Sequence record: NC_047815.1 | Direction: 5' to 3' (one strand) | Length of the DNA stretch: 64,000 nucleotides | Shown: piece after piece, positions 15,289-62,341 of the stretch | How the letters are laid out: each line of letters starts with the position of its first letter | Position numbering within the stretch: position 1 is the stretch's first letter | Program-made: the position numbers and the translations under genes | The notes under the pieces: generated by a model | What the model saw: the letters and a program-made list of their open reading frames with translations, nothing else | What the model was told of the DNA's origin: nothing | Database searches by the model: none

Positions 15289-15417
15289 TTAATTTCCTTT
15301 CTTTGCAGGAATCTTTGGTCCCTTAGCTGGCACAAAATTCAATGAACCTAACTGAGGCTTTTCACCTCTTAGCATTCTAAGATAGTTTCGCTTTGCAAGA
15401 TCTGAGAGTCTTGTCAT
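15289..15417 (-). CDS. Small basic protein (42 aa, not in ORF track)
   Basis: AGGAGA-ttggtc-ATG; MTRLSDLAKRNYLRMLRGEKPQLGSLNFVPAKGPKIPAKKGN*; preceded by the TAATTT motif; stop 2 nt before the PAAR start. Confidence 0.55.
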   Translation of the reverse strand: MTRLSDLAKRNYLRMLRGEKPQLGSLNFVPAKGPKIPAKKGN

Positions 15418-15471
15418 GACCAATCTCCTATGTCGATAGCACAAAATTACTCAGAACAGGCCCATAGACGC

Positions 15472-15498
15472 AAAAATGGGCGACCGAAGTCACCCATT
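15472..15498 (-). terminator. Intrinsic terminator with UUCG loop
   Basis: ATGGGTGAC-TTCG-GTCGCCCAT-TTTT on the minus strand, including a G.U pair. Confidence 0.85.
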
Positions 15499-15684
15499 AT
15501 GCCCGACGCTACTTGTTGCTGTTGCGTGTTTGTCTTTAGCAGAACACTATGTGACTAGCTAGTCCCGCCATCGCATCGCAATCAACAACGTCTGCCGTCA
15601 CGGTTTCACACACTCGCCCGTCGGCGCTCTAAAAGTGAAGTAACGGCATTGCTGTGTATTGTCAGAATCAACATGCTCAATGTA

Positions 15685-15846
15685 TTATGCTCGGCGCTCC
15701 CACATCCCTCGAACATGTGCCTCGGTCTCCGTAGAGACAGAAGCCGGAGCGCGTGCCTCGCTGATGACTACGCGCAATTCATCATTTAAGCATGGCTGTC
15801 TGCCGAGCAAACAGACAACCACGAGCATCCAGAAAAAGACGAGCAT
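15685..15846 (-). CDS. Small hypothetical protein with hydrophobic N-terminus (53 aa)
   Basis: AGGAGA-tttc-ATG at 15846; MLVFFWMLVVVCLL... Confidence 0.35.
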   Translation of the reverse strand: MLVFFWMLVVVCLLGRQPCLNDELRVVISEARAPASVSTETEAHVRGMWERRA

Positions 15847-15927
15847 GAAATCTCCTGGTGCTGGTTGTTGTAGCAATTGCTACAATTCTTATTTACAGAT
15901 TAATCGTCAAAGAACCAATCGTTCATT

Positions 15928-16122
15928 TTATTTTTCCGCATCTGGAGGAATCTTGCCGTCAGCACAATCTAAGATATGCTGAATTATCTGATCTCGGTCT
16001 AGACCCTGAGGTACTGTGTATGTAGGACCAGCAAGTGCAGTCTTCATGCGCTCAAGATCAAATCCACCACCAGCACAGTCAAAGCAATTGCAATTAGACT
16101 GCGGTCGACAAGCACTAGCCAT
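15928..16122 (-). CDS. Small hypothetical protein (64 aa, Cys-rich N-terminus)
   Basis: Start overlaps the upstream stop (ATGGCTAG), indicating translational coupling. Confidence 0.6.
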   Translation of the reverse strand: MASACRPQSNCNCFDCAGGGFDLERMKTALAGPTYTVPQGLDRDQIIQHILDCADGKIPPDAEK

Positions 16123-16315
16123 CTTTCTTCTCTAATGCAGCACGCACCAGACAATCTTTTGCTTCAAGCAGCTTGCGTAGACCAGCAGACTTTTCAGCAC
16201 CGTCAGGCAGGTCGTTGTCCATCTGACGTGCAAGGTCACCAATCGGTTTGGACACAGCTTGCAGACGTTCAGGAAGATGTTCGTAATCAAAATACTTGAT
16301 GATAGGACTAGACAT
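16115..16315 (-). CDS. Small helical-hairpin protein (66 aa), candidate nucleotide-signal sponge-like fold
   Basis: MSSPIIKYFDYEHLPERLQ...LPDGAEKSAGLRKLLEAKDCLVRAA; true start taken as the ATG at 16315, which overlaps the upstream stop (ATGTCTAG). Confidence 0.7.
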   Translation of the reverse strand: MSSPIIKYFDYEHLPERLQAVSKPIGDLARQMDNDLPDGAEKSAGLRKLLEAKDCLVRAALEKKDG

Positions 16316-16718
16316 TGCTTGCCTCCACAGTTTTAAGAAATTTATCCCGTGCACCAACAAGATAGTGCAGACCAAAATACTTATCAACACGTTCAGGAAG
16401 TTCATCAAGACCGGATACAAACGCGCTGATCGCTTCTGTTGTTGCCTGTGCCTTATCGTCAACCGCACTTAGACCAGCAACAATTTCCTTACAGTCATTA
16501 GCAGCAAGGTTGTCAGCATCACTGCGAGTAGCACAGTGCCACAGTTGATTACGTGACCACAATACACGGCGCAGGATTTCGTTAACTGTTTGCGTGTCAG
16601 CATCTACAGGCAGTTCATCCACAATTGCTTGTGCAATACGCAGCGTAGGTTCAACAATCTTTTGTTGAATGTCCTCAGGCACATCGCCTTGAGTTTCGAA
16701 CATCGATAAATCAATCAT
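16308..16718 (-). CDS. Tandem double helical-hairpin protein (136 aa), paralog of the downstream 66-aa gene
   Basis: GAGG RBS; both halves align by eye to the 66-aa protein. Confidence 0.7.
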   Translation of the reverse strand: MIDLSMFETQGDVPEDIQQKIVEPTLRIAQAIVDELPVDADTQTVNEILRRVLWSRNQLWHCATRSDADNLAANDCKEIVAGLSAVDDKAQATTEAISAFVSGLDELPERVDKYFGLHYLVGARDKFLKTVEASNV

Positions 16719-16739
16719 GATAGCCTCAATGTGGTGTCA

Positions 16740-17345
16740 ACCCGATGCACACTCAAGGGTGAAAGCCCGAATGCGCACCAGGTTGTCTTTCCAACTGTAT
16801 AGGATTTCACAGCCCCCGTCTCCCCTCTGAGATAGGTCTAGCTGCTTTCAGTGCCTGCGTGAGGTTGAAGTATCGGCCGATAGAAAAACGATAACAAAAA
16901 GCTCGGCTCTACGTACACGCATCACATCCTGCGGGCGTTATTCACTGATTAAGCGCATAGCAAGATTCTATGAATGACTACTAACTGGAATCTTGCGTCT
17001 CGGTGTGCGCCCCGCTAACCACCGTGAATTATGGCACACACTAGTCTCTCCTAGCAGTCCGGTCAAGCGAGTGTTCCCGTCTCCCCACTGAGATAGGTCT
17101 AACATGCTGCCTGTTTTAGAACACGCCCTAATCACAAGACCCGGGAAGAATCTTGCGACGGAGTTCGGACGTTAATACCTGTGGCCGTTATTTATCTCAC
17201 ATTTCAAGAGCAATTCAGCCATCGTCGAATGCACACGCGCCTTGCTCACCACTAGAGAGCGCGAAACATCTGGAAGTTAAAGACCGACGGCTGCGGCGAG
17301 TAGTCCTGTCAGGACAACTTAGAAAAACACGAGTGCTTTGCTAAA
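16740..17345 (-). ncRNA. Candidate large structured non-coding RNA or long structured leader (~600 nt)
   Basis: No credible ORF; at least seven stems, four with G.U pairs that work only on the minus strand; internal 26-nt duplication. Confidence 0.55.
16815..17101. repeat. 26-nt direct repeat (25/26 identical) at 16815-16840 and 17076-17101
   Basis: cccgtctcccc(t/a)ctgagataggtcta read directly from the sequence. Confidence 0.95.
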
Positions 17346-17387
17346 CTGTCTCTGCTATACAATTAATATTTACAGATTTTTAGCAAA

Positions 17388-17425
17388 AGAAAAGGGGCAA
17401 AGAAAATATTTATTTTCCGCCCCTA
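17388..17425 (-). terminator. Intrinsic terminator after the 590-aa gene
   Basis: AGGGGC-G-GAAAATA-AA-TATTTTC-TTT-GCCCCT-TTTCTTTT on the minus strand. Confidence 0.8.
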
Positions 17426-17429
17426 ATGA

Positions 17430-19202
17430 TTAGAATACTTTCTTGCGTCGAACGTTAGAATACAGAACATCATACGGAGCACCGTACAGTTCTGGACCAC
17501 GCTGCGCACGTACTGTTACCATGCCAGTATGAATATTCACAGCAGTGATTTCAACTGTAGGCTGCTTAGGCTTAACAGTCTCATAGCCAGGAGCGTTCAT
17601 TGCAGGCAGTTCATCTTGCAGCAACTGAATCGACTCAAGCTGGGCAGCAGTAGGCTTAGGCAGTTTGAGTTTGATTTCTGCAATCTTACGACCACGTGCT
17701 GTAGGCAGGCGAATATTTGCCACGCCCTGCTGTTGCAGATACGCACTGATACGACGAGCACCAGCAACAACGCGGTTGTAGAGTTCGTCAGTCATCACAG
17801 CAGAGGTAAAGCGAATACCATCAGCAGGCTGTTGTTCAGCAAGATGCAGACCCGTAACAAAGAAGCCTTCCGAGATATTACGCAGCAACAGTTTCTGAAT
17901 GTCGTTGGTGTTAATATCGATAGCAGGTATTTCGAGGTCAGGGGCACCTACAGCAGGCTCAACGTATTCAGGAACTTCACCGTCATCACCAGCTACGCGC
18001 ATTTCAACTGTTTGTGCTTGTGGGTAGGTTGCACGCAGCAGACCCGTAGCGCGAATCACTACACTGCCACCTTTAGCGAGATTGTACAGCTCATCGCTGG
18101 TGGTTGTTTCAAACAGGAAGTAGTCAACAGGGCTAGTCATCGCGGTGATTGTCTGACGCGCACGGTCCTGTACTTCGGCAGCAGTCTTGCCAAACACGAT
18201 ACGACTACGGTTAGGCTGACTTGGACTTACAGGAAAGAATGCACCATACACAGCGGCAAGCGTTTCAGCACGACGTGGTGAAGGCTGCTTGAATTTAACA
18301 GGCTGTGCATTCTCAAGAGCAGGCAGCTTAACGCCTACTTGACGTCCTTTAGCAATCGCTTTAGGCAAGTTCTGCGGCTTGACTGAGGACAGCAGTTTGG
18401 CAAGATCGCTAGCATCAAGAATCTTTTCCAGAGGCACAACAAGGTTCTGCGCAAGATAGTGACGCTTGCGGAACATATAGATGGTTGTGTCTTTCTTGAC
18501 TGCGATAGGGTTTGCCATGTTGCGAGCAACACCACCAACAGGAGTGAACGTGTTGTTCTTGTCTGCACCGACTGAACCGAATTCAGCAGGGAAATCAGAC
18601 TGACCAGCAATGTTCATTGCACGCAAGTGACCACGAATGATAAACTTAATCTTGGGTTCATCTTTCATTACCAGTTCGTAGCGATCACGATTCAGGTAGG
18701 TCATGCTGTACTGTTCGCCTTTACTAAGCTCCAGCTCGTATTCATCGTGGGCATCTTCGATGTTAACACGACGACCGTTATACGTAGCCCATTTGCGTGC
18801 AGCACTCATTGAAGCAGCAAGCAGACTTGATGCAACCGAGTTAGCTGTTTCAGCATACGCTAAGGCCGCTGTCAGCAGTTGGCTACGGTCAACGATAGGT
18901 AGTGGTTCACGCTGTCCGTGCAAGGTTACGTCTACAGCATTTGAAGCAGACATAAACACTGACTTGCCATCATCACGGGTACCTGCAAACTGCATACCTG
19001 TCAGACGACTAATGGTTGCTGCACTAACGCTCGGCAGACGTACAATGTCACCTGGAGCAAATTCATGGATTTCACCATCACGCCAAACAAAAGCACTGCG
19101 TGAGCTTAGTCCAATAAAGGTATTGTGTACGCGTTGTACACTTCTTGGGTCAATGCACAGGTCACGCACAAGGCGATTGCTTTCTTTTTTAATCAAAGCC
19201 AT
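17430..19202 (-). CDS. Hypothetical (probable virion/head) protein, 590 aa
   Basis: Long ORF carrying copies of a ~65-aa module shared with three other proteins in the window. Confidence 0.7.
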   Translation of the reverse strand: MALIKKESNRLVRDLCIDPRSVQRVHNTFIGLSSRSAFVWRDGEIHEFAPGDIVRLPSVSAATISRLTGMQFAGTRDDGKSVFMSASNAVDVTLHGQREPLPIVDRSQLLTAALAYAETANSVASSLLAASMSAARKWATYNGRRVNIEDAHDEYELELSKGEQYSMTYLNRDRYELVMKDEPKIKFIIRGHLRAMNIAGQSDFPAEFGSVGADKNNTFTPVGGVARNMANPIAVKKDTTIYMFRKRHYLAQNLVVPLEKILDASDLAKLLSSVKPQNLPKAIAKGRQVGVKLPALENAQPVKFKQPSPRRAETLAAVYGAFFPVSPSQPNRSRIVFGKTAAEVQDRARQTITAMTSPVDYFLFETTTSDELYNLAKGGSVVIRATGLLRATYPQAQTVEMRVAGDDGEVPEYVEPAVGAPDLEIPAIDINTNDIQKLLLRNISEGFFVTGLHLAEQQPADGIRFTSAVMTDELYNRVVAGARRISAYLQQQGVANIRLPTARGRKIAEIKLKLPKPTAAQLESIQLLQDELPAMNAPGYETVKPKQPTVEITAVNIHTGMVTVRAQRGPELYGAPYDVLYSNVRRKKVF

Positions 19203-61706: not shown

Positions 61707-62341
61707 CAGTCATCCTCCGACAAGATTTCTGTGGTACGCACTTTATCGTACTTGGTAGTTGTAGCATCAATGCCACGAAGTGTTGTACCGTTCTCACCGA
61801 GGTCATCATCGACAAGCACACTGCCGCTAGCAGTACGCAAACGCACAGCAGGCTTTTCAGGATGCATTTCATCGTGAGGCAGAGGTGTACGTGCATCCGT
61901 GTTGCGTGGGTCACTAACCGATACAAAAGTAGGACGACCAACATTCTTCGGACCAGTAGTGAGACGAGCAATACCATATTCATCAACGGTTGCACGCTCA
62001 TAGTTGTCTGAACCAGGCAGGTCAGCGGTATCGTAATACTGCGGTGCCCACATCAGATTGATGTTTGTCACTGGTTCCCAAGTGTTCTGGAAAGGTGCTG
62101 TCGCAGTCTTTGATTTACGTGCGAGGAATGTGCGATAGTAATCGCTGTTCTTGTCCATGCACAGCCAGATAACATTCATCGGCAGTACATAGTCGAACGG
62201 TTCTGTTTCGCAGACGATCTGAGTGCAACTGATATTCAGTACGGGATTGATTTGACGAGTGGTCTGTGCCACAGTCGTATCATCCAAGAAACCAGTAATG
62301 CTCAACAGGGCATCCGCAAGCTGATTAAGCGTAGGCGTCAT
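61706..62341 (-). CDS. Virion structural protein, 211 aa
   Basis: Paralogous to 62352-62984 and to the N-terminus of the 1354-aa protein. Confidence 0.65.
   Translation of the reverse strand: MTPTLNQLADALLSITGFLDDTTVAQTTRQINPVLNISCTQIVCETEPFDYVLPMNVIWLCMDKNSDYYRTFLARKSKTATAPFQNTWEPVTNINLMWAPQYYDTADLPGSDNYERATVDEYGIARLTTGPKNVGRPTFVSVSDPRNTDARTPLPHDEMHPEKPAVRLRTASGSVLVDDDLGENGTTLRGIDATTTKYDKVRTTEILSEDD

Follow-up and report, generated by a model that had tools for sequence, protein, structure and literature searches.

The stretch of DNA analysed here (the window, 64,000 nucleotides (nt) in length, whose position 1 is record position 62001) is 100% identical to the jumbo myovirus Erwinia phage vB_EamM_Yoloswag (KY448244.1; 259.7 kb), and two small overlapping genes on its minus strand, gp112 and gp111, together hold three copies of one helical-hairpin module. 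The upstream gene, gp112 (YOLOSWAG_111; 16308..16718, minus strand), is an annotated open reading frame (ORF) for a hypothetical two-hairpin protein of 136 amino acids (aa), and gp111 (YOLOSWAG_110; 16115..16315, minus strand) encodes a canonical single module of 66 aa, made of a short helix and a helical hairpin. They overlap by 8 nt (16308..16315, minus strand), the gp111 ATG lying within the last codons and the stop of gp112 and being preceded, as read from the sequence, by GGAGG. A third coupled small ORF, gp110 (15928..16122, minus strand; 64 aa, Cys-rich and variable among relatives), begins within the end of gp111 with an 8-nt overlap of the same arrangement. Erwinia phage pEa_SNUABM_5 and four metagenomic contigs of jumbo phages keep the gene order, a gp112-like gene (141 aa) being followed by a gp111-like gene (69-70 aa), and all of these related loci (5/5) retain the ATGNCTAR 8-nt overlap together with the upstream GGAG, which is consistent with translational coupling of gp112 and gp111. 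The wider synteny is constant as well: genes for dTMP kinase, a 144-aa and a 591-aa protein, a gap of about 0.7 kb, the pair itself, variable small ORFs, and then PAAR, gp25-like and gp6-like genes.

Few small phage proteins of uncharacterised function are as widespread and as conserved as the gp111 module. In a word-index search, its family amounts to 7,199 clusters at 90% identity and, in a full phmmer scan of 1.84 billion representatives (E<=0.001), to 4,597 clusters at 50% identity; it occurs in 357 sequenced phage records, nearly all of which label it a hypothetical protein. The phages concerned range from those of Vibrio, Erwinia and Acinetobacter to those of Mycobacterium, Gordonia and Brevibacterium, and the module sits at many unrelated genomic sites in podo-, sipho- and myoviruses as well as in prophages. 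Pfam, NCBIfam and PADLOC contain no model of the family, and scans of gp110, gp111 and gp112 against these three collections gave no significant match; among the PHROGs, gp111 matches phrog_1761 (E 3.2e-36) and phrog_5120 (E 3.9e-26), neither with an assigned function. Identity between gp111 and 80 representatives of different 50% clusters is 55-79%. Throughout these representatives (80/80), 11 positions are invariant (F9, A29, E41, R47 and L49-D54), and H13, L14, P15, K48 and R58 are nearly so; gp111, which matches the family over its full length and has every invariant residue, is a regular member. Its AlphaFold2 model, computed from the family alignment, is confident (predicted local distance difference test score, pLDDT, 96.2) and consists of a short helix (residues 4-9) followed by an antiparallel hairpin (16-35 and 40-65).

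As a whole protein, gp112 falls outside this family, having no PHROG match and most of the invariant residues replaced, and its relation to the module emerges from its halves. BLASTP between gp111 and gp112 matched the C-half alone (31% identity over 39 aa, E 5e-4). A hidden Markov model (HMM) of 80 diverse module members gave gp112 a score of 12.5 bits (E 6e-6, for one target) and aligned with a single stretch of either half, the top score among 2000 shuffles being 5.2 bits; a relative of gp112 (P0277) reached 17.5 bits with the same model and gave, in its N-half, the best single case (hmmsearch E 1.1e-5). When family profiles were compared by hhalign, the N-half of the gp112 family aligned with the module at 65% probability (E 6.1e-5, score 26.3; residues 15-65 on module residues 15-58) and the C-half at 22% (E 9.4e-4, score 20.7; residues 91-129 on module residues 19-58), the latter improving to E 2.6e-4 with the whole gp112 profile. 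In the same register, both halves scored above all of their column shuffles (200/200), which peaked at 18.0 for the N-half and 19.1 for the C-half, and above reversed controls (13.0 and 10.3). Reciprocally, the gp112-family HMM found 139/270 module proteins at E<=0.01, always with HMM positions 92-135 on module residues 16-59, and the best reversed decoy stood at 0.004.

The predicted structure agrees with this picture. In the AlphaFold2 model of gp112 (pLDDT 91.8), five helices (15-35, 42-64, 73-83, 88-102 and 111-135) make up two hairpins, the first of which has helix boundaries almost as in the gp111 model. The N-half hairpin comprises residues 13-65 (16524..16682, minus strand; delimited by hhalign, hmmsearch and the predicted helices) and the C-half hairpin residues 88-135 (16314..16457, minus strand; BLASTP, hhalign, the reciprocal HMM and the predicted helices). 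Positions conserved in the gp112 family coincide with module-conserved ones at P24, A29, L36/L107, the L-R-(R/K)-L-L stretch and C62/C55; the aromatic residue of position 11 is lost in both halves. Furthermore, well-conserved modules are found naturally fused in tandem in five other proteins (P0122, P0127, P0133, P0134 and P0217). Because both halves match the module profile, the model has two hairpins, the conserved positions coincide and tandem fusions exist in nature, we accept what the original prediction had claimed for 16115-16718: its coordinates and genes were right, and three copies of one helical-hairpin module in gp112 and gp111 are confirmed.

Only seven members of the gp112 family are present in 5.8 billion proteins, all confined to Yoloswag-like and Rivsvirus-like phages; a word-index protein search with gp112 alone returned nothing but gp112, and the six relatives were found through an alignment with the SNUABM_5 orthologue. 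Orthologues of gp112 are 35-43% identical to the Yoloswag protein, those of the flanking genes 63-81% and those of gp111 71-73% (47% in one locus), so that the rate of evolution of gp112 is about double that of the genes around it. The locus with the deviating gp111 orthologue (L093, 3419-3631) has flanking genes as similar as those of the other loci, and its module may have been swapped for a different member of the family. In Dickeya phage JA29 (L180, 3381-3692), the syntenic module gene, JA29_106, stands without gp112 and encodes 103 aa with the module at the C-terminus, preceded by a 40-aa Gly/Pro-rich extension; its first helix is diverged and its last helix conserved, and about 1 kb of unannotated sequence containing hairpin motifs lies upstream. 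Other Erwinia jumbo phages carry the module alone, elsewhere in the genome and without gp112. The lineage restriction and the JA29 locus lacking gp112 fit a local duplication and fusion. As to gene calling, the start of one gp112 orthologue (P0275, 171 aa; L090, 3001-3516) was placed 30 codons upstream of the conserved ATG, inside the conserved non-coding region, and is probably mis-called.

The module is linked to sponge proteins, which sequester immune signals, through PF24729, the Acb2/Tad1 hairpin. gp111 matches phrog_1454 at E 2.2e-4, and the members of that group score 64-84 bits on PF24729, for which the gathering score is 27 bits; two of the proteins matching phrog_1454, at 1e-25 to 1e-29, are Arthrobacter phage Jasmine gp9 (63.8 bits on PF24729) and Gordonia phage ChisanaKitsune gp20, and the scores of these two on PF24729 span 64-73 bits. 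As a positive control, the characterised Acb2 of phage JBD67, taken by its accession in PMC10312549, scores 59.6 bits. A PF24729-core set of 68 distinct domains was gathered from viral contigs via weak tblastn matches of the N-terminal domain of P0125, a module fusion that itself matches phrog_1454 with two stretches, and hhalign aligned the profile of the 80 module proteins to this set with 93.8% probability (E 1.8e-7), the alignment covering residues 1-66 at a looser setting. Likewise, a Foldseek search of the gp111 model against BFVD returned six family members first, and 17 of the other top-50 matches are named 'Acb2/Tad1 hairpin domain-containing protein' (E 0.03-2.6; template modelling (TM) score about 0.6-0.7). 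The module and PF24729 are thus homologous, and on these profile and model comparisons we place the gp111 module as a divergent clade of the Acb2/Tad1-hairpin superfamily, a distant relative of PF24729 proteins. We found no paper linking the gp111 family to PF24729, and the reviews up to October 2026 name seven sponge families, of which it is not one.

The original prediction had supposed such a distant kinship with sponges, and this part stands, carried by the hhalign alignment, phrog_1454 and the BFVD matches; the interpretation is thereby partly supported. Membership in Sequestin, Tad1 or canonical Acb2 is not supported, gp111 having no direct Pfam match and no match to a solved structure by sequence or fold. 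Both gp111 and gp112 are predicted to be all-helical and lack the N-terminal antiparallel beta-sheet domain of Tad1, which rules out that identity. PF21825, the Sequestin family, had no match in gp111, gp112 or the 80 single-domain relatives and appears solely as a separate fused domain, so that gp111 is not a Sequestin either. A canonical Acb2 identity is not supported, there being no Pfam match and no match to a solved structure by sequence or fold, TadIV-1 (T4 Vs.3) is ruled out by its restriction to Straboviridae, and Lockin by being a beta-sheet protein. We also judged as chance a borderline match to the phage P1 tail sheath gp22 (8JAJ chain a), in which gp111 residues 7-49 align with residues 426-471 (E 0.17 when gp111 alone was the query and 0.012 for the family profile), including the H-x-P and A-R-Q-M stretch.

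At the residue level, the extended alignment pairs module F9, Y11, H13 and P15 with Jasmine gp9 F41, Y43, H44 and P46. Position 11 of the module is aromatic in 79/80 representatives (Y in 59, F in 12, W in 5 and H in 3) and a two-step alignment, in which Jasmine gp9 Y43 at PF24729 position 2 is the link, equates it at moderate confidence with Y11 of JBD67 Acb2. In Acb2, this tyrosine stacks on cyclic dinucleotides (PMC10312549).

Fusion to known sponges was a discovery criterion for Sequestin (Tal et al., bioRxiv 10.1101/2025.07.12.664507). We surveyed 71 longer family representatives against Pfam, two of which carry a Sequestin domain; in P0191, the module (residues 1-65) is followed by PF21825 (131-190, 47.6 bits). 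P0125 has PF24729 ahead of the module, and a separate Sequestin gene lies 1.4 kb away on the same contig. In the accessible part of the Sequestin homologue table of the same study (Table S1), there are at least 12 matches to the module motif, two of which read as a module with a C-terminal extension. Other partners of the module are a RyR domain (P0264, residues 129-174), a Com-type zinc ribbon (P0151) and, in single cases, FtsK-gamma, RMF, DUF7323 or DUF6874 domains. Across 80 viral loci, the genes around the module vary (capsid, Mu-F, portal, lysis and terminase genes, with a single Tad2-like gene) and no partner gene is constant, which is the pattern of a self-sufficient accessory gene. Such structural neighbours are not evidence against a sponge, because acb2 of JBD67 also sits among structural genes, namely between the major head and head-tail adaptor genes.

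An independent view of the family is offered by the screen of Tal et al. (10.1101/2025.07.12.664507), who examined 124 small phage proteins selected as AlphaFold-Multimer homo-oligomers with several positively charged pockets between protomers. Table S2 of that study contains at least seven gp111-family members (61-93 aa), each given as 'hexamer' and once as 'dimer/hexamer'. The family was thus flagged as sponge-like by an independent structure-based predictor, and its kinship with the Acb2/Tad1 hairpin explains why it was selected.

On this basis, we tentatively favour, at somewhat less than an even chance, the reading that gp111 is a sponge-type small homo-oligomer of the Acb2/Tad1 superfamily and gp112 its lineage-specific tandem derivative. 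By analogy with the superfamily, gp111 would most likely assemble into a hexamer-type particle, built like Acb2 and Tad1 as a trimer of dimers, and would trap a small molecule bearing phosphate, the most plausible candidate being a nucleotide signal of host immunity outside the published screen. Two copies of the module fused in one chain would make gp112 a covalent pseudo-dimer, which would since have evolved at about double the rate of the neighbouring genes, losing most module-invariant residues. We further propose that the three genes gp112, gp111 and gp110 share one transcript, headed by a long conserved leader, and that their translation is coupled. gp112 might then either trimerise into a six-hairpin particle with altered pockets, a second assembly, or co-assemble with gp111; the conserved translational coupling is the sole basis on which a gp111-gp112 hetero-oligomer could be proposed.

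Several observations weigh against a sponge. Above all, none of the seven gp111-family members made cultures collapse with type I Thoeris, which signals by 3' cyclic ADP-ribose (3'cADPR), or type II Thoeris, which uses histidine-ADP-ribose (His-ADPR), nor with the type I cyclic-oligonucleotide-based antiphage signalling system (CBASS), which uses 3'3' cyclic GMP-AMP (3'3'-cGAMP), nor with the Pycsar systems that use cyclic CMP (cCMP) and cyclic UMP (cUMP) (10.1101/2025.07.12.664507); for two of the members, one of the Pycsar strains was not transformed, and systems using cyclic triadenylate (cA3) lay outside the screen. Its authors also expect most positive-pocket candidates not to be sponges (10.1101/2025.07.12.664507). 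These five commonest signals are apparently not ligands of the family. Of the ligands suggested by the original prediction, cGAMP and 3'cADPR accordingly lose ground, seven relatives having failed to inhibit 3'3'-cGAMP CBASS or type I Thoeris. Moreover, neither gp111 nor gp112 matches PF24729 directly even at E<=10, just 3/80 module representatives do so weakly (best E 0.025), and the single JBD67 Acb2 sequence is not significant against the module or the PF24729-core profile. Searches of PDB sequences matched no sponge, whether the query was gp111, gp112, P0125 or the family profile, and Foldseek of the gp111 and gp112 models against the PDB gave nothing at E<=0.001, Acb2 and Tad1 included. 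The cyclic-trinucleotide site of Acb2 comprises R67/T74 within an R-x2-A-I-x2-T motif of the last helix, for which the counterpart in JBD67 is R82-W-A-A-I-A-K-T89; in a chained alignment, a low-confidence mapping, the module places D54 and a variable residue at the R and T positions, and the motif is not recognisable. gp112 retains little of the N-terminal F-x-Y-x-H-L-P motif. Finally, known sponge families are described as having 'high sequence divergence' (10.1101/2025.08.24.671296), and conservation of the module far above theirs could point to a conserved protein target instead. If the family nevertheless consists of sponges, its ligand would be other than 3'cADPR, His-ADPR, 3'3'-cGAMP, cCMP or cUMP, and the published screen narrows the candidates to that extent.

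The main rival to the sponge reading is favoured by the negative screen and the unusual conservation: the Acb2/Tad1-type hairpin may have been re-used outside immune-signal sequestration, to bind a conserved protein of the host or a nucleotide with a housekeeping or regulatory role, with gp112 as a diverged paralogue in a related accessory role. Such re-use would account for seven members being inactive in five signalling systems and for the extreme conservation of the module across phages of Proteobacteria, Actinobacteria and other hosts, where representatives of the 50% clusters share 59-79% identity and the 11 invariant positions, and it sits well with fusion partners such as RyR, the Com zinc ribbon, FtsK-gamma and RMF and with neighbours that are mostly capsid, portal, lysis and terminase genes without a fixed partner. 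It fits less well with the recurrent fusion to two different sponge domains and the Sequestin and Tad2-like genes nearby, with the published prediction of hexamers with positive pockets and with the retention of an aromatic residue aligned with the ligand-stacking tyrosine of Acb2, and the argument from neighbours is blunted by JBD67 acb2, which likewise lies beside structural genes. We consider it a serious contender, albeit an unlikely one. Placing the pair in the virion, as minor virion or baseplate-assembly proteins, is highly improbable in our judgement. What suggests it is the location of the pair, which in Yoloswag and related phages is flanked by gp113 and the PAAR/gp25/gp6 block; however, the stretch from gp111 to the PAAR gene is a variable small-ORF island, the unit has a promoter-like motif and a leader of its own, podo-, sipho- and myoviruses and prophages carry the module at many unrelated positions, and the resemblance to the P1 sheath protein is borderline (E 0.012).

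A different objection concerns gp112 alone, which might be unrelated to the module, a helical protein that converged on it through composition and helix periodicity, the pair being merely neighbouring small genes. Helical hairpins are a common fold, the hhalign probabilities of the two halves are only 65% and 22%, and neither half is significant against the PF24729-core profile in hhalign (E 0.11 and 0.0055); in addition, the N-half and the C-half do not match each other significantly (E 0.095), a caveat on the three-copy reading. Convergence would, however, have to produce two halves that both exceed 200/200 shuffles and the reversed controls in the same register, a reciprocal HMM that hits 139/270 module proteins at a fixed register with its best reversed decoy at 0.004, coinciding conserved positions and matching helix boundaries. 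True tandem fusions exist in the family, and gp112 adjoins a module gene and occurs only in the Yoloswag/Rivsvirus-like lineage. Hence, we regard convergence as improbable and retain the tandem derivation of gp112 within the sponge reading.

Upstream of the pair, the 711 nt between gp113 and gp112 hold no annotated gene and are conserved at the DNA level in all relatives; in the six-locus alignment, the invariant blocks are long and conservation exceeds that of the gp112 coding sequence. gp113 itself (17430-19202, minus strand; 590 aa) is a large hypothetical protein that always precedes the RNA region and the gene pair, and its orthologues (63-66% identity) have a precomputed Pfam match to PF20294 (KMPT-N). 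The end of gp113 is marked by a terminator-like GC-stem hairpin with a T-run (17385..17423, minus strand), GGGGC...GCCCC followed by the T-run being present in 6/6 loci. Next comes a promoter-like motif at the head of the unit, AATCTGTAAATATTAATT (17361..17378, minus strand), which is nearly invariant in the six loci, L088 having a single substitution. The motif recurs with 2 mismatches immediately before gp109 (15884-15901, minus strand; 0.05 expected by chance), and AATCTGTAAATATTAATT is possibly a phage-specific promoter marking two small transcription units.

The remaining part, of about 640 nt directly upstream of gp112 (16719..17360, minus strand), is a candidate leader or non-coding RNA delimited by the six-locus alignment and RNAalifold. 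The predicted consensus fold has 115 pairs, 30 of them showing compensatory changes, and an energy of -98.6 kcal/mol compared with -54.0 +/- 5.1 for column shuffles (z = -8.7). A hairpin motif, ACCTRTCTYAGNNGGGAGACGGG, with an 8-bp stem and a 6-nt loop whose fourth base is variable, occurs in two copies within the region (16815-16837 and 17076-17098, minus strand), with none expected by chance; three IMG/VR contigs in total carry it, and it is recognisable, with one compensatory stem change, upstream of the JA29 module gene. The region had no Rfam match at E<=1, and ARAGORN returned neither tRNA nor transfer-messenger RNA (tmRNA). Related upstream regions are located at L002 5621-6374, L088 2302-3000, L090 2398-3000, L092 2255-3000, L093 2272-3000 and L180 2378-3380. 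The region looks like a lineage-specific structured leader or non-coding RNA of the gp112-gp111-gp110 unit; in its own right, it may represent a new phage RNA, of Yoloswag-, Rivs- and Salmondvirus-type jumbo phages.

On the other side of the pair, the interval from gp111 to the PAAR spike gene (15300-16122, minus strand) forms an island of variable small ORFs that differ among the relatives L088, L090, L092 and L093. gp110 matches phrog_17259 (E 1.4e-5) and, in L092, the N-half alone of a 120-aa ORF, the C-half of which is matched by 56-aa ORFs of SNUABM_5 and L088; L093 has none of the gp110-type, 56-aa or 120-aa island ORFs.

Carried to its furthest extent, the sponge reading would make the gp111 family an eighth large sponge clade for a signal beyond the five tested, e.g. 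cyclic trinucleotides, cyclic oligoadenylates, N7-cADPR or decoy dinucleotides, with the intact module and gp112 co-assembling into mixed six-hairpin particles with non-equivalent pockets, behind a new structured RNA leader (about 640 nt) by which the unit would be controlled or accompanied. As a whole, we consider this extended version quite unlikely. Irrespective of its fate, linking the gp111 family to the Acb2/Tad1 hairpin provides a concrete, testable identity for a very widespread protein. In addition, the Yoloswag pair constitutes a natural experiment in which an intact module stands beside a fast-diverging tandem copy, the pattern expected when an oligomeric binder is retuned.

Among the closest known systems is Acb2 (anti-CBASS 2; PaMx33, JBD67 and T4 Vs.4), which is, like gp111, a small all-helical phage protein in which a long antiparallel hairpin follows a short N-terminal segment. 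Acb2 forms a hexamer, as AlphaFold-Multimer predicts for gp111-family members, and the module resembles acb2 of JBD67 also in being an accessory gene next to structural genes. Unlike Acb2 with its 94-108 aa, however, the module has only 60-66 aa, and the gp111 family is much more conserved than the Acb2 homologues. Tad1 (Thoeris anti-defence 1) shares with the module the C-terminal two-helix hairpin of PF24729. In Tad1, this hairpin forms the trimer-of-dimers core and the cyclic-trinucleotide site, and the N-terminal beta-sheet domain precedes it (10.1101/2023.11.15.567273). Sequestin (PF21825, the crAss001_48 family; T4 Y16O) is, like gp111, a helical phage protein of about 60-80 aa, but it is a dimer or tetramer that binds 3'cADPR, whereas the tested gp111-family members did not inhibit type I Thoeris. 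Finally, the Acb4-Tad2 and Tad2-Sequestin fusions (Tal et al. 2025) are reminiscent of gp112, P0122 and P0133 in that one chain carries two small oligomerising domains; gp112 differs from them in that both of its domains derive from one module, most invariant residues are lost, and the fused copy is coupled to an intact single module.

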